This document shows positions 13,340-59,472 of a stretch of 64,000 bases of DNA, one piece after another. The translations under genes and the position numbers were made by a program. The DNA is from Phyllobates terribilis. Taxonomy: Eukaryota. The stretch lies in contig NW_027362771.1 in the NCBI RefSeq assembly GCF_046119375.1, forward strand, positions 131,626,001 to 131,690,000, written 5' to 3'. Under the pieces are notes generated by a model. That model made no database searches. It was not told where the DNA came from and saw only the letters and a list, made by a program, of their open reading frames with translations. Position 1 is the stretch's first letter, and every line of letters starts with the position of its first letter.

Positions 13340-13620
13340 AGGTGAGCCTAACAAGAACAGGGCTCTTTGGGGACCATATCATCTCTTCCAGGACACCTTG
13401 CTCTTCTTCAGACTGAAGATAGTTCTTAGTAATATTGACTGTATGCTTGGAATTGTTGTTCTGCTTCAGAATATATTTGGAGCCAATCAGATGTCTCCCT
13501 GATGGTTTTTTGATGGATAAATATTTGTCTGTATTTCTCAGTATTGAAGACACCGTTCATCCTCATGAAATTGAAAACTCCATTTACTGAAATCCAGCTC
13601 CAACCTTGCAAGGAACCTCA
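13340..13620 (-). pseudogene. Tc1 transposase fragment
   Basis: RMNGVFNTEKYRQI...SGRHLIGSKYILKQNNNSKHT resembles a decayed [10 protein letters not shown] region. Confidence 0.55.
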
Positions 13621-13837
13621 ACAATGCTTGACTGTTGCCTCTAGACACTCATTTCGCAAAAAAATGGATAAACGATATAATGGTGTCCAAGAGGCAATAT
13701 GCAAATTGCCTCTTCAGAGAAAAAGAGGACTTAAACTCTATATTGTCACCTATTGGAAGCAGCAATCCTACAAGTCACAATCAACCCTTTAGAGTCGTGC
13801 AATATGACTTAGGATAAAAGCCAAATCAGAATCTCAA

Positions 13838-13882
13838 TTTACAGAAACAATGTTTCGGGTTGTTGGCCCTCGTCAGTGCAAA
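13838..13882 (-). ncRNA. Minimal type I hammerhead ribozyme, copy B (core intact, stem III mismatch)
   Basis: - strand: UUUGCA CUGACGA GGGC caaca ACCC GAA ACA uug UUU C|UGUAAA. CUGANGA and GAAA are intact; UUC triplet; C.U mismatch in stem III. Confidence 0.8.
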
Positions 13883-13945
13883 GTATGAGAACTGATTTGG
13901 CTAGATGAGAGTCTCTGGACTGAGGTCTAAGGGGTAAAGTTTCTC

Positions 13946-14036
13946 CTTGTGGAGAGTGACACACCGACTCTGACATGTCAAGGTAAGGAGGCTTATTCAC
14001 CGTGCAATGCTCCACAGGGAAATTTAATATGCAAAT
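13946..14036 (-). promoter_or_regulatory. snRNA-type promoter-like module inside the hammerhead repeat unit
   Basis: Octamer ATGCAAAT at 14029-14036 (also 13699-13706). ACTCTCCACAAG (- strand, 13957-13946) resembles the Xenopus U1/U2 PSE as recalled (CTCTCCnnATG). A weak SPH/Staf-like element lies at 14003-14022. Confidence 0.5.
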
Positions 14037-14169
14037 TAACTCTTCAGAGAAAAAGAGGACTTGAATTCTATATTGCCACCTATTGGAAGTAGCAATCCTA
14101 CAAGTCACAATCAACCCTTTAACGAGTCGTGCAATATGACTTAGGATAAAAGCCAAATCAGAGTCTCAA

Positions 14170-14214
14170 TTTGCAGACACTGTGTTTTGGACTGTTGGCC
14201 CTCGTCAGTGCAAA
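14170..14214 (-). ncRNA. Minimal type I hammerhead ribozyme, copy A (G12A lesion)
   Basis: - strand: UUUGCA CUGACGA GGGC caaca GUCC AAA ACA cag UGU C|UGCAAA. Stem I 6 bp, stem II 4 bp, stem III 3 bp, GUC triplet; GAAA reads AAAA. Confidence 0.8.
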
Positions 14215-14310
14215 GTATGAGAACTGATTTAGCTAGATGAAAGGCTCTGGACTGAGGTCTAAAAGAGGCAATATCAATTTTTTTTAAAATAAAAAAATAA
14301 TTAATAAAAT

Positions 14311-14783
14311 ACAACCTGTCTCCTCCCTACATCTGTGACCTAGTCTCCCGGTACTTAAGTGCACGCAATCTCCGATCCTCACAAGATCTCCTTCTCTACT
14401 CCCCTCTTATCTCCTCTTCCCACAATCGCATACAAGATTTCTCCTGTGCATGCACCCTACTCTGGAACTCTCTACCCCAACGTATCAGACTCTCGCCTAC
14501 CGTGGAAACCTTCAAAAGGAACCTAAAGACCCACCTCTTCCGACAAGCCTACAACCTGCAGTAACCACCGCTCCACCATACCGCTGCACGACCAGCTCTA
14601 CCCTCACCTACTGTATCCTCACCCATCCCTTGTAGATTGTGAGCCCTCGCGGGCAGGGTCCTCTCTCCCCCTGTACCAGTCGGTGACTTGTTTTTGTTCA
14701 GACTGTTGTACTTGTTGTTTTCTATGTATACCCGTTTTTCACATGTAAAGCGCCATGGAATTAATGGCGCTATAATAATAAAA
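14311..14783 (+). mobile_element. 3' end of an L2-type LINE
   Basis: PPYI.DLVSRY..ARNLRSSQDLLL...LLWNSLPQRIRLSPTVETFKRNLKTHLFRQAYNLQ* (TAA 14562-14564), then a tail tgtaaagcgccatggaattaatggcgctataataataaa. Confidence 0.82.
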
Positions 14784-19661: not shown

Positions 19662-22600
19662 TGTAAAGAGATGGACATATTGACCGGCTCCCCCTTGAAG
19701 ACATAAGTGCTGTGTATAATGTGATGTTTAATTTGAATAATGTCCTGTGCCTTGTGTACATTTTGTGTCATGTGAAGTGTAAGAGGTTTGCCTATGTAAT
19801 ATGATAATGTAAAGTATTATAGTGTATAGTGATGCGATGTATGAAAGACATAGGTTAGTACTTAGGACATAAGGTAGTGTTTGCATAGAATGTATGTGAA
19901 AGGGTACGTTTCCCCAGCAACAGACCTCAGGGTCAGGGAGAGAGTTAATGTTGGGATCAGCCCAAAGGGGGAGGGCTTAGTGCTAGGGCAAGGGACCAGC
20001 TTCCTGAAGTTAGTCAGATAGGAGTTAGAGTCTGAAGAAGTGACAAGTGTGAATTGCTGCCATTTGGGTGAAATACAGCAAAGGAGACGAAGGGACAATG
20101 AGGTAGCACGACGAGGAACTGACAGAAGAGACAGAGTGGCCTTCCACCTTAGAGGGGTCCTTGGATAGGACGACGGGTCAAGACAAACCCTGAGCTTGAT
20201 AAACTTCAAAGGTATGGACCTAAAGAGGACTGAGACTGTGGGACTAGTGAAGGTCCCGAGTGGTAGATGCAGGGCGTCCATAGCAATAGGACGCAGAACC
20301 GCTGAGCGGGTGTAGAGAAACTCGCTGAACAGTACAGATGCAAAAGGAGCCCCGACCAAGTGTTGAGTGCATTTACTTAACATACATTTCAGTAGGCCAA
20401 CATTTCGGATTTAAAATTTTTTTTTTAAGCTGGTGTTATAAAGTATTCTAATTTACTGAGATAATGACTTTTGTGTTTTCATTGGCTGTAAGCCATAATC
20501 ATCAACATTAACAGAAATAAACACTTGAAATAGATCACTCTGTTCGTAATGACTCTATTTAATATATAAGTTTCACTTTTTGTATTGAAGAACTGAAATA
20601 AATTAACTTTTTGATGATATTCTAATTTTGTGAGAGGCACCTGTACAATCAAGATGGTGACTGTCATGCTGTCTAAAATGGCGCCGAGCAAGGACTGCAA
20701 GATGGCAGTGAGTGAAGCGAAATGGACCCGGAAGTAAAAGAGCACGAAGTGGTGCCCAGCCCTTTAAGAGGTATGCCTACAGAAGGGAGTACCGGAACCG
20801 AGAGCGCCAGCCCATAGCGGGGAGTGTCCGTCGTCGCAGAGTGAGGTGGAAGGAAAAGATACACCTGCCTAGGAAGGTGTGGCCAGTGGAAATAGTTAAG
20901 AACATTCGAGGAAAAGGGATGGTGAGACTGGGTAGACTCCACCCAGTGAAAGGCGGAGAAATGATGGGCCTCAGGAGCCGGAAGAGACGACTCCATTCGA
21001 GAGATGTAAGCCATCGGGAGGACAGCAGCGTGAAGTAATGTCAGAGTGGCAACTGACGTTGCCCCAGTGTGAGTCAGTGGAGGAGAATGCTGACCGATGA
21101 CAAGTACCCCAGCTACTGGAGATGGCGAACAAAAAGGTGAGACCAGGTGGGCTAGGTGAAAAGGACCGAGGCCAAGCAAGAGACATGGACGGCGCCCTGG
21201 TTTGTGACCTGCGATGAGGCCAAGCGCCTGGAGACCCCACAGTCCCAGATGCCGGAGGTAAGCTCCAACCCGGGTGCATACCTCTTGCCACACAGACGAA
21301 GTTGATTGTGAGGGTGGTCCAGGCCCAGTTGGTTAGTTCCGATGGGGAAAGATGCCAGGGTCAGCTGTGGAGGTTGATGGCCCTCATGAGACAGGGGAAG
21401 AAGGATGACTTCATGGGGGGAGTGATCGCTTTCCTATCCAGTGGGACGCTGGTGCTGAGTGAGAAGGCGTCCTCCCGAGAGAAACCAGTTCCTGTCCCAA
21501 GTCATGCCGGGGTCAGGAGAGTTACAGGCCTGCAGCCTGAGGGTGAAGTGCAGCCAGGGGACCTAAGCATGAAGGCAGCTGCAGCATCCAAAATTGCAGC
21601 AGTGAGTGAAAAGGAGGCCCTGTAAGCTCAGTTTTGCCTGTTGCATGGAAAGAGAGCCACTAGAAGAACTGTTCTGCGTTTGAGAGGGCAGGAGGCCCTA
21701 AGTGTGCCAGGAACTCCCAGGTGTTGGCCAGCACGGTCAAAAGTTTTGTGTCTTTCCTCCCCTCCAAGTTTGTTTTATGTACGCTGCATACCCCCCTGCT
21801 GGATTGCGGGACTGTGAACTCTTAAAGGGCCAGAAAACCTTGTCTGTCCCTATGGACTGTGTTCCAGTACTACTGGAGCTGTTGCTATGTTTGCCAATTG
21901 GTCTGGGATTAAAAGAAACTTAAGACACGTGGTGTCAGTATCCTCAAACTGGAGAGACCAGAGTCATATGGACTCCTAGAGGCAAGTGGACAACCTGAAG
22001 GCAAATGAATGAATTGATGGGGCCCTGTTGTTGGCTCATGGGTCCTTGCAAAACCAGGGCCAATGTTAACCTGAAGAAATGTTGCCGGGTTAAAGAGACT
22101 TGGACAGTTGTAGATTCAGGGTACTAAACGAGTAGGATCGGTACTGTATCACTTCAGAAGAAATCAGGGAGAAGGCGTCATACTGGTTTTGTTTGTCCCA
22201 GAGAAGAAAAGGACGAAGACGTTATGTTGGTTAAAATGTTATGATATGTGTGGTATAGTACATTGGTGTCTTCCAGGTGTTCTGGATGGTCGAGGACAAC
22301 AATCACTAAAAAGGAGAGAAATGTAAGGAGATGGACATACTGACCTGCTCCCCCTTGAAGACATCAGTGCTGTGTAAAATGTGATGTGTAATCTGAATAA
22401 TATCCTGTGCCTTGTGTACAACTTGTGTCATGTGAAGTGCAAGATGTTTGCCTACGTAATGTGATAATGTAAAGTATTATAGTGTATAGTGATGTGATGC
22501 ATGAAAGACATAGGTTAGGACTTAGGACATAAGGTAGTGTCTGCATAGAATGTAGGTGAAATGGTACGTTTCCCCAGCAACAGACTGCAGGGTCAGGGAG

Positions 22601-25494: not shown

Positions 25495-27130
<1,636 letters not shown>

Positions 27131-28630: not shown

Positions 28631-30157
28631 TAAAGTGGAGAGCGCAAAGTTTAACCCTTTAATGACCCCAAAATGCTTTTAATGGCCGTCATTAAGGAGT
28701 GTTAATCCTCAACGTTGTCCACATAATTGGTATCGCCACATTCAAAAACGACCCCAACTATCAAAAGGTCACATTATTTATCCCATATGGTGAACACTTT
28801 AAAAGAGAATAAAAATGCAAAAATGTAGCTGTGTCATCATACTGACATGCAAAAAAATGTAATAAAAAGCAATTAAAAACTCGTAGGTAAAAAATAAAAG
28901 TTATCATTGCTCTGTTGGTGGATAAATAAATCATCAAATCATCCAGAAAAACAAGCCGTCATACAACTCTGTTGGCAAAAAAAAAGTTTGAACTCTCAGA
29001 ATGAGATGAATATTTTTTTTTGATGTAGCAAAAGTAGCAAAACAAAAAATAAAAAGAAAAAAAATGAAAAAGATAAAAATCTTGTTTTTGCTGTAATTGA
29101 ACTGAGCTGAAGAATAGAGTTGTCTCCACATGGTGAATGATGTTTAAGAAAATAAATAAAAGTAATTGTTGAACTGCTGTTTATTTGCTCATTCTGCCTC
29201 CCAAATATCAGTGTAAGGGCATAGTCAGACGGCTGTATAAATCAGATCAAGATCGGAACATAGTGCACGAACTGGTTGGCGGCTCTCCCAATCCAAGCGT
29301 GACAGCTTCATGTATTTCTATGCAGCTGTCAATTTCTGGTCAGGAGAGCAGCCAGCCAGTCCGAGCACTGCGTTCAGATCTCGGTCTGATTTATAGGGCC
29401 GTATGACTGCACCCTAAGGCCTTGGATTAAATTTATCTTGTTCTCTACTCTGAATACTTACTTTGGGGTTACATTCTAAATCTTCAAAATACATGATTTA
29501 GACAAAACCACTTCTGGAACTACTCACTTAAATAATAAGGCCGATGGAGTTACTTTGGACTCTGGCCTCTGTTCTGGCGGTGTCTGTCATTTTGGCATAC
29601 AAAAGATGGGGCACTTCCAGAACAGAGGACAGACATGTTCCAAAAGGTCACCATCTAGCTCATTATAGTGAAAGGTTCTGTCGGGCAATCTATTTTTTAT
29701 ATTAGGAATGGTACCAATAAACTTCAAACTTCAATTAGGTCCATCATCTATCAGTGAAAAAGGTGGATCTCCAAGTTACTGGTAGTACAAAGGCTCTGGA
29801 AAAACAAGGCTCCACTCCAAAAAAATCCAACGGAATCTGCGCTCTAAAATACAAATGGCTCCCTCCCTTCTGATCCCTGCAATAACCATCTGCATGTATG
29901 GCATTACTGTAGCAGGGAGAGCCCACTTAATTAGGCTGTGTGTCTCCAGAAGCGTAGTAAAATGCATTCAGCAGTTTTTACTGAACCCGTCGATGAATTC
30001 ATAGAGTGATCTAGTTTTCAAAATGTGTTTTTTTTTGCTATTCTGGCACCTTAGGGGCTCAGTAAGTGACACACGCAAGCTATTCTATTAAACATGTGAT
30101 GTCAAATGGTGCAGCATAGATATCTCTTAGAGTTTTATAACATTGGGCCATCATGAC

Positions 30158-30188
<31 letters not shown>

Positions 30189-32244
30189 TTATCACTAAAA
30201 TGTTACATTAGCTGCAAACTTTTCATTTTCACCTCCCAATGATAGAGTAGGGACTCGCAAAATCATGAGGACCCTTGACGTTTGGGTTAAGAGCTTACTT
30301 ATTTTGGCCAAAATATCAACTAATACCTCATATGATATATTTTTTTTGCACTTTTTTATCTGCCAGGGCGTGGCCAGGCCCACTTAGGGTGACCCTGTGA
30401 ATGAGGGCATTGCACCTCTGCGATGCACGAAGAGGGTGCCGGGCATCCCGCCTAATCGACTAGGAAGGGCGTTTAATAGGATGCCGGCCAGGCACGGTTG
30501 CTGCGAGTGTGAATGGCACCCTATTTGCAGGTTTCATCTGGTGCGGTTATATTGCGGGGCAGTCACTCCTCCAGTGTGAGTGGTTGAGAGTGATTGCTCA
30601 CGGCATTCCGCACCTGTGTCATCTCCTTCCTACAGGGGGGGGGGGCCGGCCGCGTCCTGGTGTGTATTTCTCTTGTACCTTTGGCTGCTAAGTTCCATTG
30701 CCTTTTTGCTATTTTCTAAAGTGGAGAGCGCAAAATTTAACCCTTTAATGACCCCAAAATGCTTTTAATGGCAGTCATTAAGGAGTGTTAATCCTCAACG
30801 TTGTCCACATAATTGGTATCGCCACATTCAAAAACGACCCCAACTATGAAAAGGTCACATTATTTATCCCATATGGTGAACACTTTAAAAGAGAATAAAA
30901 ATGCAAAAATGTAGCTGTGTCATCATACTGACGTGCAAAAAAATGTAATAAAAAGCAATTAAAAACTCGTAGGTAAAAAATAAAAGTTATCATTGCTCTG
31001 TTGGTGGATAAATAAATCATCAAATCAAACAGAAAAACAAGCCGTCATACAGTTCTGTTGGCAAAAAAAAAGTTTGAACTCTCAGAAAGAGATGAACATT
31101 TTTTTTGATGTGCAAAAGTAGCAAAACAAAAAATAAAAAGAAAAAAAATGAAAAAGATAAAAATCTTGTTTTTGCTGTAATTGTACTGAGCTGAAGAATA
31201 GAGTTGTCTCCACATGGTGAATGATGTTTAAGAAAATAAATAAAAGTAATTGTTGAACTGCTGTTTATTTGCTCATTCTGCCTCCCAAATATCAGTGTAA
31301 GGGCATAGTCAGACGGCTGTATAAATCAGATCAAGATCGGAACATAGTGCACGAACTGGTTGGTGGCTCTCCCAACCCAAGCGTGACAGCTTCATGTATT
31401 TCTATGCAGCTGTCAATTTCTGGTCAGGAGAGCAGCCAGCCAGTCCGAGCACTGCGTTCAGATCTCGGTCTGATTTATACGGTGGTAGGACTGTACCTTA
31501 AGGCCTTGGATTACATTTATCTTGTTCTCTACTCTGAATACTTACTTTGGGGTTACATTCTAAATCTTCAAAATACATGATTTAGACAATTTAGTTCCTC
31601 TTCTGGAACTACTCACTTAAATAATAAGGCCTATGGAGTTACTTTGGACTCTGGCCTCTGTTCTGGCGGTGTCTGTCATTTTGGCATACAAAAGATGGGG
31701 CACTTCCAGAACAGAGGACAGACATGGTCCAAAAGGTCACCATCTAGCTCATTATAGTGAATGGTCCTGTCGGGCAATCTATTTTTTATATTAGGAATGG
31801 TACCAATAAACTTCAAACTTCAATTAGGTCCATCATCTGTCAATGAAAAAAGTGGATCTCCATGTTACTGGTAGTACAAAGGCTCTGGAAAAACAAGGCC
31901 CCACACCAAAAAAATCCAACGGAATCTGCGCTCTAAAATACAAATGGCTCCCTACCTTCTGATCCCCGCAATAACCATCTGCATGTATGGCATTACTGTA
32001 GCAGGGAGAGCCCACTTAATTAGGCTGTGTGTCTCCAGAAGCGTAGTAAAATGCATTCAGCAGTTTTTACTGAACCCGTCGATGAATTCATAGAGTGATC
32101 TAGTTTTCAAAATGTGGGTTTTTTTTGCTATTCTGGCACCTTAGGGGCTCAGTAAGTGACACACGCAAGCTATTCTATTAAACATGTGATGTCAAATGGT
32201 GCATAGGTATCTCTTAGAGTTTTATAACATTGGGCCATCATGAC

Positions 32245-32278
<34 letters not shown>

Positions 32279-32330
32279 TTATCACTAAAATGTTACATTA
32301 GCTGCAAATTTTTCATTTTCACCTCCCAAT
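28631..32330 (+). repeat. Direct duplication of 1.61 kb (28631-30240 and 30717-32330) around a 476-bp spacer
   Basis: Collinear copies, offset 2086-2090, with a few dozen substitutions and indels seen by eye. Confidence 0.95.
29217..29414. mobile_element. Harbinger-type MITE, also present in the duplicated block near 31300-31500
   Basis: TAA|gggcatagtcagacggc...gccgtatgactgcaccc|TAA. Confidence 0.75.
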
Positions 32331-32858
32331 GGTATAAAACTCTGAGAGGCATCTGTGGGTTCAAAATATTCACTACACTCCAAGATTAATTCCTTGAGTG
32401 GTGTAGTTTCCAATATAGGGTCACTTGTGGGGGGATTTTGCGGTTCTGGCTCAACAAGGGCTCTGTAAACTGTACCCAAACATTTCAAACAAAATCTGCA
32501 TACCAAAAGCCAAATGGTGCTCCTTCCCTACAGAGCCTGCATTGTACTACAACCATGGTGTATTGCTGTATTCAGTACACATTGCATAATAAAGTGTCTT
32601 GTCCATTTCCTACCATTATCCTTTGTGAGAACTAAAAATGTGCGGCTAAAGTAACATCTTTATGGGAAAAACAAACAAAAAACCCTAAAAACATAATTTT
32701 TCTTCTTTACGGCCCAATCTTACAAAATTCTGTGAATCACCCATGACTTTAAAATGCTCATTACACCCCTAGATGAATTTCTTGAGGGGTTTAGTTTCCA
32801 AAATAGTGTCACTTGTGTGGGTGTCGGCATTCTGGAAATTCAACATGGCGTCTGTAAT

Positions 32859-38369: not shown

Positions 38370-39520
38370 CAGAGGGGTCTGTGTACCACAACATGCAAGG
38401 ATGCATCATGAATCCTACAAAATTATGCAGCATGATAGAAGCAAAACCACACTAAACAAATCAAAAGGCTTTTTTTTTCAGATGATTATTAAAGGGAACC
38501 TGTCACGTCATGTAAAGCATCTAAACTGTCCCCAGTGCGTTGTTAGTGATGCAATGTGCATCACTAACACTTTTTTTATTTATTATTAAAAACTGTGCTT
38601 TAATGATGTCCAAAAAGCACTTTATGTAGTTATATCGTACCTGCTCATTTAGTCATAGGGGTGCGCTTCATTTTCTGTTCAGATACGGGAGTCGCTGCCC
38701 ACTCACTTGGATTGGATTTCCATGGTTGCGCCGACATCACTAGAATCCCACACTTGCGCAGTGTGTAGCCAGCCGCGCTTGCACAGTGTGTAGCGTGGAG
38801 CCGGTCGTACTTGCGTAGTGTCGATCGGGGGGCCGTGCTTGCGCAGCGACATCCGTGGCTGGGCAGAAAATGAAGCACACTCCTATGACTAAACGAGCAG
38901 GTACAATATAACTATATAAAGTGCTTTTTGGACAACATTACAATGCAGTTTTTAATGAAAATAACGTGTTAGTGATGCACATTAAATCACTAACAATGCA
39001 CTGGGAAAAGTTTAGATGCTTGAAATTATGTGACAGTTTCACTTTAAAAATTTTTTTTCCTCCGGGTGTCCAAGCCTTGATGTGGAAATGGATGAAAAAC
39101 ATGTCTCGAGAGCCCAAAACCCTCATCAGCAACCATAATAAAGGGTGCAGGCAGCCCAAAGTCTCCTGGAACCACACAGGGTTGTGGAAGGGCAAGAATA
39201 ATCTCAGAAAGCAGCCAAGCCCCAATATCAATTACAAAAGAGTAGTTACTGTCAACCAAAACCAGCAGCACCACTGAAATACTTCTTGTAATTGAAGGAC
39301 CGGGAGCCAGAGTTTGTTGGCTTCTTGGTACGAATGTGCTTGCCATCCTGTGCACAGATGCACTTTGGACACTTGGCTGCTTCCATGAAGCACTGAGAAA
39401 TCCTCACCCAACCCTGTGTGGTTTGGCAGAGGAATCATCCAGCTCCCGTAGATCCGTTGACAATTCTTTTGCTTTCCCCATGACTCACAATCCAGAAATA
39501 TGAGTGGCTGGATGAAAAAT
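38370..39520 (-). pseudogene. PIF/Harbinger DDE transposase remnant, split by a TTAA MITE
   Basis: Fragments CICAQDGKHIRTKKPTNSGSRSFNYKKYF, SVVLLVLVDSNYSF, FIMVADEGFGLSRH and RRKKNF match recalled Harbinger/HARBI1 motifs (GAxDGKH, VDANY, VADEAF). Confidence 0.75.
38493..39043. mobile_element. TTAA-targeting palindromic MITE (T2/Kolobok-like)
   Basis: TTAA|agggaacctgtcac...gtgacagtttcact|TTAA with long imperfect arms. Confidence 0.8.

Positions 39521-48596: not shown

Positions 48597-48643
<47 letters not shown>
48597..48643. repeat. (CA)n microsatellite; other SSRs at ~30160 and ~32246 (AAT), ~36520 (GT), ~45312 (TATG), ~48163 and ~53490 (TA)
   Basis: Read directly from the sequence. Confidence 0.95.
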
Positions 48644-48858: not shown

Positions 48859-51212
48859 GGCCATATACCGGATACACATGTCCTCTGTGGTAGAGCTGGG
48901 GGGGGCCATATACCGGATACACATGTCCTCTGTGGTAGAGCTGGGGGGGGCCATATACCGGATACACATGTCCTCTGTGGTAGAGCTGGGGGGGGCCATA
49001 TACCGGATACACATGTCCTCTGTGGTAGAGCTGGGGGGGGCCATATACCGGATACACATGTCCTCTGTGGTAGAGCTGGGGGGGGCCATATACCGGATAC
49101 ACATGTCCTCTGTGGTAGAGCTGGGGGGGGGCCATATACCGGATACACATGTCCTCTGTGGTAGAGCTGGGGGGGGGGCCATATACCGGATACACATGTC
49201 CTCTGTGGTAGAGCTGGGAGGGGCCATATACCGGATACACGTGTCCTCTGTGGTAGAGCTGTGGGGGGGGGGGGCCATATACCGGATACACGTGTCCTCT
49301 GTGGTATAGCTGTGGGGGGGGGGGCCATATACCGGATACACGTGTCCTCTGTGGTATAGCTGTGGGGGGGGGGCCATATACCGGATACACGTGTCCTCTG
49401 TGGTATAGCTGTGGGGGGGGGGGGCCATATACCGGATACACGTGTCCTCTGTGGTATAGCTGTGGGGGGGGGGCCATATACCGGATACACGTGTCCTCTG
49501 TGGTATAGCTGTGGGGGGGGCCATATACCGGATACACGTGTCCTCTGTGGTATAGCTGTGGGGGGGGGGGCCATATACCGGATACACGTGTCCTCTGTGG
49601 TATAGCTGTGTGTGTGGGGGGGGGGGCCATATACCGGATACACGTGTCCTCTGTGGTATAGCTGTGGGGGGGGGGGGCATATACCAGATACACGTGTCCT
49701 CTGTGGTATAGCTGTGGGGGGGGGGGGGGCATATACCGGATACACGTGTCCTCTGTGGTATAGCTGTGGGGGGCCATATACCGGATACACGTGTCCTCTG
49801 TGGTATAGCTGTGGGGGGGGGGGGGCATATACCGGATACACGTGTCCTCTGTGGTATAGCTGTGGGGGGCCATATACCGGATACACGTGTCCTCTGTGGT
49901 ATAGTTGTGGGGGGCCATATACCGGATACACGTGTCCTCTGTGGTATAGCTGTGGGGGGCCATATACCGGATACACGTGTCCTCTGTGGTATAGCTGTGG
50001 GGGGCCATATACCGGATACACGTGTCCTCTGTGGTATAGCTGTGGGGGGCCATATACCGGATACACATGTCCTCTGTGGTATAGCTGTGGGGGGCCATAT
50101 ACCGGATACACATGTCCTCTGTGGTATAGCTGTGGGGGGCCATATACCGGATACACATGTCCTCTGTGGTATAGCTGGGGGGCCACATACCGGATACACG
50201 TGTCCTCTGTGGTATAGCTGGGGGGCCACATACCGGATACACGTGTCCTCTGTGGTATAGCTGGGGGGCTACATACCGGATACACGTGTCCTCTGTGGTA
50301 TAGCTGGGGGGCTACATACCGGATACACGTGTCCTCTGTGGTGTAGCTGGGGGGCTACATACCAGGATACACGTGTCCTCTGTGGTATAGCTGGGGGGCA
50401 TATACCGGATACACGTGTCCTCTGTGGTATAGCTGGGGGGCATATACCGGATACACGTGTCCTCTGTGGTATAGCTGGGGGGCATATACCGGATACACGT
50501 GTCCTCTGTGGTATAGCTGGGGGGCTACATACCAGATACACGTGTCCTCTGTGGTATAGCTGGGGGGCCACATACCGGATACACGTGTCCTCTGTGGTAT
50601 AGCTGGGGGGCTACATACCAGGATACACGTGTCCTCTGTGGTATAGCTGGGGGGCATATACCGGATACACGTGTCCTCTGTGGTATAGCTGGGGGGCATA
50701 TACCGGATACACGTGTCCTCTGTGGTATAGCTGGGGGGCTACATACCGGATACACATGTCCTCTGTGGTATAGCTGGGGGGCATATACCGGATACACGTG
50801 TCCTCTGTGGTATAGCTAGGGGGCTACATACCAGATACACGTGTCCTCTGTGGTATAGCTGGGGGGCTACATACCGGATACACATGTCCTCTGTGGTATA
50901 GCTGGGGGGCATATACCGGATACACGTGTCCTCTGTGGTATAGCTAGGGGGCTACATACCAGATACACGTGTCCTCTGTGGTATAGCTGGGGGGCCACAT
51001 ACCGGATACACGTGTCCTCTGTCGTATAGCTGGGGGGCTACATACCAGGATACACGTGTCCTCTGTGGTATAGCTGGGGGGCATATACCGGATACACATG
51101 TCCTCTGTGGTATAGCTGGGGGGCTACATACCGGATACACGTGTCCTCTGTGGTATAGCTGGGGGGCTACATACCGGATACACGTGTCCTCTGTGGTATA
51201 GCTGGGGGGCCA
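48859..51212. repeat. ~45-bp minisatellite, about 50 copies, in CCDC59 intron 1
   Basis: Unit ccatataccggatacac(a/g)tgtcctctgtggta(g/t)agctg(tg)G(n). First copies at 48861, 48906, 48951, 48996, 49041. Confidence 0.98.
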
Positions 51213-51235
51213 TATGCCAAACACATGCGACCATA

Positions 51236-53556: not shown

Positions 53557-55155
53557 CTACCGTTCAAAAGTTTGGGGTCATTTAGAAATTTCATTAATTT
53601 TGAAAGAAAAGCACATTATTTTTTTTCAATGAAGCTTACATTAAATTAATCAGAAATACTCTATAAATTGTTCATGTGGTAAATGACTATTCTAGCTGCA
53701 AACGTCTTGTTTTTATTGCAATATCTACATAGGTGTATAGAGGCCCATTTCCAACAACCACCACTCCAGTGTTTTAATGGTACATTGTGTTTGCTAACTG
53801 TGTAAGAATGCTAATGGATGTTTAGAAAACCCTTGCATAAGTGTTAGCCCAGTTGAAAACGGTTTGGCTGATTTGAGAAGCTATAAAATTGACCTTCCTT
53901 TGAGCTAGTTGAGAATCTGGAGCATTACATTTGTTTGTTCTATGAAACTCTCAAAATGGCCAGAAAAAGAGAACTTTCATGTGAAACTCGACAGTCTATT
54001 CTTGTTCTTAGAAATGAAGGCTATTCCATGCGAGAAGTTGCCAAGAAACTGAAGATTTCCTACAACGGTGTGTACTACTCCCTTCAGAGGAGAGCACAAA
54101 CAGGCTCTAACCAGAGTAGAAAGAGAAGTGGGAGGTCCCGCTGCACAACTGAGCAACAAGACAAGTACATTAGAGTCTCTAGTGTGAGAAATCGACGCCT
54201 CACAGATCCTCAACTGGCACCTTCATTAAATAGTACACGCAAAACGCCAGTGTCAACCTCTGCAGTGAAGAGGCGACTCCAGGATGCTGGCCTTCAGGGC
54301 AAAGTGGCAAAGAAAGAGCCATATCTGAGACTGGCTAATAAAAGGAAAAGATTAATATGGGCTAAAGAACACAGACATTAGACAGAGGAAGATTGGAAAA
54401 AAGTTTTATGGACAGACGAATCAAAGTTTGAGGTGTTTGGATCACACAGAAGAACATTTGTGAGACGCTGAACAACTGAAAAAATGCTGGAAGAGTGCCT
54501 GACGCCATCTGTCAAGCATGGTGGAGGTAATGTGATGGTCTGGGGTTGCTTTTGTGCTGGTAAAGTGGGAGATTTGTACAAGGTAAATGGGATTTTGAAT
54601 AAAGAAGGCTATCACTCCATTTTGCAACGCCATGCCTTACCCTGTGGACAGCCCTTGATTGGAGCCAATTTCATCCTACAACAGGACATTGACCCAAAGC
54701 ACACCTCCAAATTATTCATGAACTATTTATGGAAGAAGCAGGCAGCTGGTATTCTATCTGTAATGGAGTGGCGAGCGCAGTCACCAGATCTCAACCCCAT
54801 TGAGCCTTTGTGGGAGCAGCTTGACCGTATGGTACGCAAAAAGTGCCCATCAAGCCAATCCAACTTGAGAGGGGCTTCAGGAAGCATGGGGTGAAATTTC
54901 TCAAGATTACCTCTGCAAATTAACAGCTAGAATGCCAAAGGTCTGCAATGCTGTAATTGCTGCAAAGGAGCGTTCTGTGACCAAAGCAAAGTCTGAAGGA
55001 GAAAATTATTCTTTCTAATAAAAATCATTATTTCTAACCTTGTCAATGTCTGGACTATATTTTCTAATCATTTTGCGACTCATTTGATAAATAAAAGTAT
55101 GAGTTTTCATGGAAAACACAAAATTGTCTGGGTGACCCCAAACTTTTGAACGGTA

Positions 55156-56601: not shown

Positions 56602-59472
56602 CAGGGCTGTGGAGTCGGAGTTAGTTTTGGTCGGAGTCGGTAGAAATGTACCGACTCCGACTCCAGCTTTTAAAAAAAAATGTATTAATATTTCATAATT
56701 GAACTTTCATATGAATTTTATAATGTTACTCAAATATATATGAACAACAGTGATAAGCAGTTCTGCTGAAGATAGAGACATTTCTTACTTCTTGTGTGTC
56801 ACTGTTCTCCACTGCCCTTATCTAATCTTATACTTGGTTAACCTCATGCTGCCCCAACCCCCCTACTTACAATGTATGAAACTGAAAGTGAAAATGTGTT
56901 GCAAATTCTTAGTAGTAAAGCTCCTCCTCTAGACTAGATGTTTACTAGGTGTGTGTCTTCCAAGCATCTCACAGCTGCTACTCAGAAGCGGAAGACTGTA
57001 AGAAGTATTATCCTTTCAACAAACTTTGCATCAGTTAACTGTGAGTACATGAGGAATAACAGTATTAATGACCACTATATCAGTTGTACGACCTGGCAAT
57101 AATTTTGTACAATTGTTTTTAGGAAAAACAATTGTCATTTGGATTGTGAATGCAGAATTAAAAACCTGAGTGTCAAAGAAGCGTCACATTAAATCAGCTG
57201 TATTTGAACACTTCACCATCACTCAAGATAGAAAACATTATGTCTGTCAGTGTATGACAAATGATCCAGACGAAAACAAATGCTGTGAAGCCAAGATCAG
57301 TGCATATTCAGGCAAAGATAAAAATGCTCCTACCAGAGCTTCTAATCTAAAGAGACATTTACAGCGCTTTCAACCAGAAGTACTGAAAGCAGTGGATGAG
57401 AGAGAATGCATCCAAACCAATGAACCAGTGCCCTGCTCTTCCAGCCAAACAAAGGAGCAGAGCACTTTGCAGCCATCAGTTGCAAGATATTTTGTCAGTG
57501 ACAAAGTTACTCTGACAATGACAGTAGATACATTTAAAAAACAGATCATAGAGCTTGTTGTAAAGGATAGTGTGCCTATTTCATTATTTTCACGACCAGC
57601 TTTTGTGTCTGAATGGGGAAATGGCCCGCAAGCTTGGTGTTTCTCTGGAGAGAGAGAGTATTAGAAAATTAGTAATCCAAGAAGCTTTTAAACAAAAGGA
57701 AGAACTTAAAAAAAACTCTCAAGGGACGCTTTCTGTTTCTTAAAATGGATGCCTGCACACGTCACAGAGTGAACTATTTTGCCATCAATGTCTGATTTGT
57801 TTGTGACAAAAATGAAATAATTACCAAGACATTGGCAGTAAAAGACACCAAAGCTCATCACACCAGTGAGTTTCTCCAGGTCTTGGTGGAAAAGGTTCTG
57901 CAAGACTATGAACTTAAAAAAGAGCAAGTTCTTTCTGTCGTAACTGACAATGCTTCAAATATAAGTACTATTAAGCTAATGAATGAGAGTAATGATGGTG
58001 ACCAGCAGCTAGAAGAACATTCTGGGTCCACAGACACAGAAATGTTTGAAATAGAGGAACACAGTATTGTAACTGAGGAGCAAACTGAAGTTGCTTCAGA
58101 TGAACAGCAACATGATAGTTTAGATGATCTTGTTGAAACTGTGACAATTCGTTCTTTCATTCATCACATGTGCTGTGTTGTGCATACACTACAGCTGGCT
58201 ATAAGAGACAGTCTGCAAGAAGGACATGCTGCTGCACTGATTGGCAAGGTGAGAAAATTGGCTACTGTTGCCAGAACCCCTAAAGTTGACTCAATTTTGA
58301 AGAGACGTGCTGGAAAAGGGGCAATTATTGATCAAGCCACACGATGGGGCAGTACTTACTTAATGATTCAGCGCTTGGTTGAACTGAAAACCTTTCTTGT
58401 AGACATGGCTAACCCTCAACTGACGCTAAATGAAAGTCAGTGGAATCAGGTGACTGAGCTGGAAAAATTGCTAGAGCACCCATTTACAGTGACTAAAAAA
58501 TTACAAGCAGAGGACTTAACTCCAGGTATTTTCTTAAAGGAGTGGAAGAACCTGATGTTTCGCCTGTCCCAAAGAGGAGGATTAATTGCAAGTGGCATTG
58601 CTACATCAATGAAACGGAGAGAGGAGCTACTATTACAAAATAGCATTCTTTTGGCAGCTGTTTATGTAGACCCAATGCATCGGATTCTTCTAGATGATCA
58701 ACGGCTAACTAAAGGAAAAGAAGCTCTGTTTGAAATAGCAGTAAGGATGAAAGGGTTGCAGAACAGTCAGGAGGAACAAGAAGAATTTGGTCGTCCTGCC
58801 ACATCTTCACCCTCATCATCAACTGATGAAGAATTTAATTTCGAAAAATATTTGGATCACAAGGACCGTGCAAAGTGTTCCCGCATAGAAGAAGAGTCAT
58901 CCCCATCAAAGAACACAGCCAGTACATTTCAGCAGAATTTTTCATGTGCACTAAAAGAAATTGAGAAATTTGACCGTTCATCAAAAATAACAGTGCAACA
59001 AGCGATTCCTCTGTATCCTGACATTGTCAGAGATGTTGCCCGAGTGGTTACTGCTTTGCCACCAACCCAAGTTAGTGTAGAGAGGTTGTTCTCTGCTCTC
59101 AAAATAATTAGATCAGATTTGAGGGCATCCATGAAGGAGGATCTGACAGAGGCAATACTTTTTCTGAGGACAAATTTCTAGATTTCTTCTTATTAACTGC
59201 ATAAGTGTTTATTGCATATTTACTTACAAGAGTTTAGAAAAGTTTCTAAAAGTTATTTGCTATATTCTAATTGTATTCTAATAAATAGAGTTTTTGCTCT
59301 AAGTGGTCTGATTACTTATATGATGGTGAGAAACTGAATAAGCACGATGTTAATATTTTAAAACAGTAAATTTATTGTTCCGAATTGGCCATTTATGAAG
59401 GAGTCTGAGTCGGAACCTGATAAAATCCAGGAGTCGGAGTCGCAACTGTGGCTTACCGACTCCGCAGCCCTG
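56602..59472 (+). mobile_element. Full-length hAT transposon (2871 bp)
   Basis: 17-bp TIRs cagggctgtggagtcgg / ccgactccgcagccctg; 8-bp TSD ctgggaac / ttgggaac; subterminal GGAGTC repeats. Confidence 0.93.
57170..59181 (+). pseudogene. hAT transposase pseudogene
   Basis: BED-like N-terminus (FEHF..C.C..CC..SNLKRHL), LKMDACTRH, VVTDNAS, CVVHTLQL, TRWGSTY, and the C-terminal dimerisation motif LPPTQVSVERLFS. Frameshifts at ~57.61-57.71 kb and an in-frame TGA at ~57793. Confidence 0.88.

Follow-up and report, generated by a model that had tools for sequence, protein, structure and literature searches.

A decayed tandem retrozyme insertion in a frog genome and its conserved octamer block, a candidate element of a satellite 2-like internal promoter

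Retrozymes, a class of small retroelements without coding capacity typified by newt satellite 2, give rise to abundant circular RNAs in many animals. In the retrozyme cycle, tandem units are transcribed, a type I hammerhead ribozyme cuts the transcript to unit length, and the resulting RNA is circularized and copied back into DNA. The conserved catalytic core of the hammerhead includes G12 of the GAAA box. The vertebrate Pol II snRNA promoter, for its part, comprises a distal element (DSE) with an octamer and a Staf/ZNF143 site, located ~200–220 bp upstream of the start, a PSE at about −55, and a 3′ box. An internal Pol II promoter of this snRNA type is reported for newt satellite 2 in a passage of PMC2220036 that cites Coats et al. 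1994. Metazoan non-LTR retrozymes are described as non-coding tandem units with a GC content below 50%, target-site duplications (TSDs) longer than 4 bp where present, and self-paired RNA, and the hammerheads of the amphibian members cleave well only as dimers (PMC7229834). Amphibian units have a mean length of 316 bp and are present in seven of the seven amphibians sampled; those of Xenopus occur as dispersed monomers, dimers, and multimers, many of them inactive in vitro (8 of 9 tested gave no cleavage), and the preprint that describes them (10.64898/2026.07.22.740005) makes no mention of promoters.

Here, we compare with these systems an insertion in a 64-kb stretch of frog DNA, referred to below as the window (the whole stretch analyzed, from which N stretches are absent). 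The insertion and its ribozymes are laid out as follows.

13696..14262, minus strand: whole insertion (567 bp), 1.71 tandem copies of a 332-nt unit
14262–13931, minus strand: copy A, full unit (self-BLAST and repeat finder)
13930–13696, minus strand: copy B, partial unit (self-BLAST and repeat finder)
13689..13700, plus-strand reading AAGAGGCAATAT: right copy of the TSD, exact 12/12 direct repeat
14263..14274, plus-strand reading AAGAGGCAATAT: left copy of the TSD, exact 12/12 direct repeat
14151..14234, minus strand: type I hammerhead A, cleavage after C14176 (fold and descriptor scan)
13819..13902, minus strand: type I hammerhead B, cleavage after C13844 (inverted repeat, fold, and descriptor scan)

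Copies A and B are 92% identical over the 237 nt compared, at a spacing of 332 and with 19 differences (self-BLAST and repeat finder), and self-BLAST reveals this retrozyme-like element to be the sole copy within the 64-kb window. The insertion has a GC content of 41% and a CpG o/e of 0.34. Five bases of the right TSD copy, AATAT, are shared with the element's own end, and the TSD is thus 7–12 bp long with terminal microhomology. No recognizable coding capacity is found in the element; its 105-aa ORF, which crosses the unit, belongs to no family. The element is a tandem repeat with a unit within the 150- to 450-bp range, low in GC and flanked by a TSD of more than 4 bp; its unit RNA is strongly self-paired, and it has no LTR, PBS, PPT, or coding capacity. 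These features fit an amphibian non-LTR retrozyme similar to newt satellite 2, inserted long ago and now inactive. The insertion begins and ends away from the ribozyme cleavage sites, an arrangement that would suit a circular or multimeric RNA reverse-transcribed from an internal start rather than a processed linear monomer. Viral, metagenome, and prokaryotic genome contigs, scanned with exact anchors chosen in the ribozyme and the unit body, yielded no further DNA copies; a 20-mer match in a Bacillus chromosome, obtained in the exact-anchor scan of prokaryotic contigs, was set aside as chance.

The downstream flank (13540–13690, minus strand) reads by eye as the remnant of a Tc1-type transposase (..MNGVFNTEKYRQIFIH..), so that an older DNA transposon seems to have been the target of the retrozyme; on its other side, the insertion is bordered by an A/T-rich tract. 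Elsewhere in the window, an apparently intact Tc1/Sleeping-Beauty-like transposase ORF (25714–26793, minus strand; 344 aa counted from its first ATG) has protein counterparts in a Logan assembly (91% identity), in the poison frog Ranitomeya imitator (92%), and in the fish Prochilodus (89%), the last of which hints at a possible horizontal transfer of this Tc1 element. The 92% match and the R. imitator relative of the retrozyme unit described below are in keeping with a frog host. The stretches 53935–54894 and 57832–59181 (both plus strand) are listed with a second, split Tc1-like copy and a fragment of a hAT dimerization domain. A minisatellite at 48859–51215 (45-bp unit, ~50 copies, 94% matches) is open in six frames, which explains the cluster of long overlapping ORFs there, and an (AC)23 microsatellite is found at 48597–48643. 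Finally, a direct duplication of ~1.6 kb (28631–30241 and 30717–32331, 96.9% identity) lies 2086 bp apart, and a second pair of repeated matches, near 19925/22585 and 20185/22845, is ~2660 bp apart.

Each unit is organized as a helix I of 11 bp (perfect, outer) plus 5 bp plus 6 bp, followed by CUGACGA, a short helix II, the GAAA-box region, a short near-palindromic helix III, and a cleavage triplet. In hammerhead A, all three helices are good, as is the cleavage triplet, GUC, and G12 of the catalytic GAAA box is an A (CCAAAAC). Hammerhead B harbors a full core, with a GGG/CCC helix II and GAA-A; its helix III is weak, with a C·U mismatch at 15.2/16.2 adjoining the closing pair, and its helix I, the inner 5′ strand of which (TTTGCA) begins at 13882, contains a G·U pair. 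Rfam scans returned no hammerhead or other family, either for the whole window at the gathering score or for 13600–14350 at E ≤ 10. A relaxed hammerhead descriptor, which gives 0.11 false matches per random window, recovers both copies and a third site at 39135–39089 on the minus strand. This third site (39089–39135; CTGATGAGGG...GAGA...) has a core mismatch and was rejected as a chance match; it falls within a stretch read by eye as coding for a Harbinger/PIF-type transposase (..MVADEGFGLSRHVFHPF..).

Both copies appear to be genuine but decayed hammerheads, an assignment based mainly on the long perfect helix I on either side of the core and on a likeness by eye to axolotl hammerheads (sequences from the supplement of PMC7229834). 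Eight of the 19 differences between copies A and B fall within 30 nt (14163–14192 versus 13831–13860) that span the 3′ strand of helix II, the GAAA, helix III, and the cleavage site; divergence within the repeat is thus greatest in the catalytic half, with a different defect in each copy. The short helix III of the unit fits the dimer-only cleavage reported for amphibian retrozymes (PMC7229834). With A lacking G12 and B having a damaged helix III, the locus is likely dead for the retrozyme cycle under any reading of its promoter.

A first-pass annotation of this DNA had proposed an internal snRNA-type promoter upstream of the hammerhead, built from an octamer, an SPH/Staf-like element, and a PSE-like motif. 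The three strings are present letter for letter at the positions given below, together with the second octamer and a further box; the octamer and other snRNA-promoter consensus strings used here were taken from PMC5493778.

14029..14036, minus strand: perfect octamer ATTTGCAT of copy A (motif scan)
13699..13706, minus strand: perfect octamer ATTTGCAT of copy B, 3 nt before the insertion end (motif scan)
14003..14022, minus strand: SPH/Staf-like element TTTCCCTGTGGAGCATTGCA, of which the halves fit the consensus and the gap and middle do not
13975..14002, minus strand: conserved box without a named motif, which includes AATAAGCCTCCTTACCTTGAC (comparison with the R. imitator relative)
13946..13957, minus strand: PSE-like ACTCTCCACAAG, three mismatches to the published PSE consensus

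The window contains three octamers, versus 5.8 expected, and two of the three lie inside the 567-bp element, one in each unit copy. As the first-pass annotation had held for the SPH-like element, its ends fit the consensus and its middle does not: the halves TTTCCC and GCATTGCA match YYWCCC at 6/6 and SCMYYRCR at 8/8 positions, the gap between them is 6 nt instead of the 5 in the consensus, and none of the middle RNMAT positions fits. The site also carries CCCT in place of CCCA, the latter described as highly conserved in Staf sites (PMC3282657). By its extra nucleotide of spacing, its unfitting middle, and this CCCT, the SPH-like element is therefore not a Staf site; the Staf/ZNF143 consensus YYWCCCRNMATSCMYYRCR, with up to three mismatches, has nine sites in the window versus 17 expected, and none in the element. 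The best such match in the window (CTTCCCACAATCGCATACA at 14416–14434, plus strand, two mismatches) lies beyond the element by ~150 bp, on the other strand, and is probably incidental, the total count being below chance.

The two-half SPH pattern with a 6-nt gap occurs once in the window, versus 0.2 expected, and on the same strand its halves follow a perfect octamer at a distance of 6 nt, a coincidence with a chance of ~1e-4 by our estimate, given three octamers. The octamer and the post-octamer block (14036–14003) are non-random. Both the SPH-like and PSE-like motifs reside in the single-copy part of the unit (14025–13931), and the two-copy comparison covers the octamer only. An octamer-plus-TATA reading of ATTTGCATATTAAAT, as in H2B/Ig-type promoters, was also considered and rejected, as the TATA-like string abuts the octamer without spacing and misfits TATAWAW.

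Further insight into the single-copy part comes from the 105-aa ORF (14156–13842, minus strand), which has one relative among 1.84 billion representative proteins in a full HMMER search. This relative, P0001, is a 129-aa “unnamed protein product” of the poison frog Ranitomeya imitator without Pfam domains; a word-index protein search with the 105-aa ORF gave no match, and the reverse search with P0001 recovered only P0001 itself. Residues 12–43 of P0001 align with the sense ORF over window positions 14045–13950 (66% identity over 32 residues), and residues 1–11 align with the opposite strand over 13949–13981 (8/11). P0001 thus joins pieces of two element copies that lie in opposite orientation, as is typical of repeat exonization. 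These pieces meet at the point where the conserved box reads, in antisense, CAAG/GTAAGG, a splice-donor-like sequence; in the window, the antisense of this box (13975–13995, plus strand) reads ATGTCAAG/GTAAGGAGG, a strong splice-donor-like string, and the sense strand carries a pyrimidine tract and AG immediately upstream of the octamer (14036–14060, minus strand). An ORF of 105 aa with a relative at this identity might be taken for a protein-coding exon, in which case the motifs would be by-products of coding constraint. We find this barely credible for an ORF that crosses a hammerhead, is duplicated with the repeat, and has no second homologue in the database searched, and whose one relative is an unnamed, domain-free product that begins with 11 residues matching the opposite strand of the same element.

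On this alignment, we scored the minimum number of base changes per codon, so that all counts are lower bounds from one protein-level relative, in which the protein leaves third codon positions free. Counted in this way, P0001 requires 0/8 changes in the octamer (14036–14029), 1/6 in the spacer (14028–14023), 1/20 in the SPH-like element (14022–14003), 3/28 in the next box (14002–13975), and 7/17 in 13974–13958. In the PSE-like motif (13957–13946), the sense-derived piece requires 4/12 changes, two of them in TCTCC, and the antisense-derived piece (13981–13949) requires only 4/33 and is compatible with CTCTCCA. These minimum counts show an apparently conserved block that would extend from the octamer to ~13975, and a PSE-like motif on which the two frog pieces seem split. 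The block reaches beyond any named motif, and its conservation is thus not motif-specific.

The assignment of a PSE to 13957–13946, as proposed at first, is not borne out. Strings with three mismatches to the human PSE consensus number 318 in the window versus 328 expected, and the match is thus at chance level; one of the two frog pieces differs in the core of the motif, which is complementary to the middle of the SPH-like element. ACTCTCCA occurs three times in the window and TCTCCAC 16 times. Taken by itself, the PSE assignment is doubtful. A PSE centered at ~13951 would place the start at ~13896 and the octamer at about −135; this start depends on the PSE assignment, is not established, and is the weak link of the promoter reading. 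The cooperativity with which Oct-1 and SNAPc bind persists at short spacings in constructs (PMC2211285). The 3′ box, GTTYN0–3AARRYAGA, has no exact match in the 64-kb window and only two-mismatch strings in the element; ribozyme cleavage could serve in its place. No TATA box is found in the element, which suits an snRNA promoter of the Pol II and not the Pol III type, and a Pol III promoter was rejected for want of both a TATA box and a tRNA-like gene.

Of the internal snRNA-type promoter as first proposed, the non-random octamer block, the presence of the octamer in both copies, and the satellite 2-like unit remain in its favor, and the Staf consensus, the PSE, the 3′ box, and the distance of about −135 count against it. 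The accompanying argument that only multimeric insertions express themselves is sound in its logic and understated in its demands. From a start at ~13896, hammerhead B alone lies downstream in the 1.7-mer, and no unit-length RNA would thus be releasable from the locus's own promoter; a self-expressing insertion would need a promoter followed by at least two ribozymes, or ~2.4 units or more, which is absent in the 1.7-mer.

The complementarity of the two doubtful motifs raises a different explanation. In the predicted circular fold of the unit (MFE −93.1 kcal/mol, z = −3.8 versus 200 shuffles, 60% paired), 14022–14010 (UUUCC-C-UGUGGAG) pairs with 13954–13942 (CUCCACA-A-GGAGA) in a helix of 12 bp with one bulge, with core pair probabilities of 0.97–0.99 and −16 kcal/mol. 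The part of the SPH-like element that misfits the Staf consensus is the complement of the PSE-like motif, and the two may thus be read as the arms of a 12-bp helix in retrozyme RNA. The unit would then have no internal promoter and be transcribed by read-through from host or neighboring promoters, with the block kept at the RNA level or by recent common descent and the octamer incidental. This explanation accords with a review in which metazoan retrozymes seem promoter-less and transcribed via read-through (PMC7761336), with the significant structure of the unit RNA, and with the chance-level PSE match and unmet Staf consensus. The helix itself lends it no statistical weight, as random sequence of the same composition has a best helix with one interruption of 12.7 bp on average, and the 12-bp helix is thus indistinguishable from chance by length. 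The relative carries changes at 14014 and 13948, both inside the helix; their partners are third codon positions and could compensate, although such compensation is not visible at the protein level. A perfect octamer followed by both Staf half-sites is improbable by chance under read-through, and the salamander counterpart has an internal promoter. On balance, we judge read-through transcription nearly as likely as a satellite 2-like promoter.

An internal Pol II promoter need not be of the snRNA type. Animal non-LTR retrozymes are related to the pseudo-LTRs of Penelope-like elements (PLEs; preprint 10.64898/2026.07.22.740005), and the Penelope pseudo-LTR contains a start site and an internal promoter, partial tandem insertions being typical of PLEs (PMC8557442). 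A pseudo-LTR that houses hammerheads, start site, and promoter makes an internal promoter in a PLE-derived retrozyme plausible by descent. Such a promoter would act through an octamer-binding factor without PSE or SNAPc, and its start would not lie at 13896, which would reconcile a conserved octamer block with a doubtful PSE. No PLE RT or endonuclease (GIY-YIG) is found in the 16 scanned of the 23 window ORFs of at least 120 aa, and neither a TATA box nor another core element was found in the element; we consider this origin distinctly unlikely.

We assign a satellite 2-like internal promoter in the unit a probability of roughly 0.4; no other part of the unit is as good a candidate for a transcriptional element as the octamer block. 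In this satellite 2-like model, the octamer and adjoining block (14036–14003, probably to ~13975) would be a real conserved element, most likely a DSE-type enhancer bound by Oct-1 and perhaps a Staf-like factor, within an internal Pol II promoter comparable to that of newt satellite 2. Transcription would run into the hammerhead of the next unit, and active members of the family would probably follow the general retrozyme model, with multimeric transcripts, cutting by paired hammerheads, circularization, and reverse transcription. The broader proposition that anuran retrozymes are self-contained Pol II units, with a conserved enhancer of Oct-1 and Staf-like type and a divergent core of the SNAPc type that together send capped transcripts into the hammerhead of the following unit, seems to us unlikely as it stands. 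If true, it would make the arrangement common to salamander satellite 2 and hence old in amphibians, and it would conflict with the current model of promoter-less retrozymes transcribed by read-through. An octamer block conserved in a frog family would link the promoter-less view of the review (PMC7761336) with the older work on the newt satellite 2 promoter, and it would offer a concrete, testable element. For annotation, the locus is a dead retrozyme insertion with an antisense splice-donor-like string, a relative of which is exonized in a predicted frog protein.

Among known systems, the element resembles vertebrate Pol II snRNA promoters in that its perfect octamer is adjoined on the same strand by a post-octamer element, that it lacks a TATA box, and that a TCTCC string lies ~55 nt upstream of a structured RNA. 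It departs from them in the failing spacing and middle of the Staf-like site, the chance-level PSE, a DSE at about −135, and the lack of a 3′ box; unlike in snRNA genes, the product is a ribozyme-processed repeat RNA. With PLE pseudo-LTRs, it shares hammerheads, partial tandem insertion, and variable TSDs, and in Penelope the pseudo-LTR also holds a start site together with an internal promoter. The hammerheads of PLEs, in contrast to those described here, are usually of minimal form, and no PLE coding sequence lies nearby. The Schistosoma Sm-alpha satellite/SINE is likewise a repeat with a type I hammerhead, to which a passage of PMC2220036 ascribes an internal promoter; that promoter is Pol III and tRNA-like, whereas the frog element has no tRNA-like structure. 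The non-LTR retrozymes of Xenopus (57 families, e.g., REP4; preprint 10.64898/2026.07.22.740005) share the anuran host and the type I hammerhead.

The closest counterparts are salamander satellite 2 and the axolotl retrozymes Rtz331 and Rtz353 (Epstein & Gall 1987; Coats et al. 1994; Cervera & de la Pena 2020, PMC7229834). The host is a salamander there and a frog here, and the satellite 2 promoter was shown by experiment, whereas a promoter in the frog unit is putative. By eye, the likeness to the axolotl elements is confined to the ribozyme core and short motifs. The order of an octamer-type motif, a TCTCC-type motif, and the ribozyme is shared, with ATTTGCAC ~86 nt upstream of TTCTCCCATCAC in Rtz331 versus 81 nt for the corresponding distance here, and Rtz353 contains ACTCTCCA and TTTCCCAGAA...TTTTGCAT (by eye on the supplement text); the distance from motif to cleavage site is 112 nt here versus ~135 nt in axolotl. 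These axolotl and frog spacings are rough hand counts, to which we give little weight. Helix II and loop 2 are similar by eye (CUGA.GAGG.CCAA...CCGAAACA), and both type I hammerheads have a short near-palindromic helix III (ACAC-A-GUGU here and ACACGUGU in Rtz353), which implies dimer action. Finally, the frog element shares with these salamander repeats a tandem unit of ~330 nt, low GC, a non-coding sequence, and a self-paired RNA.
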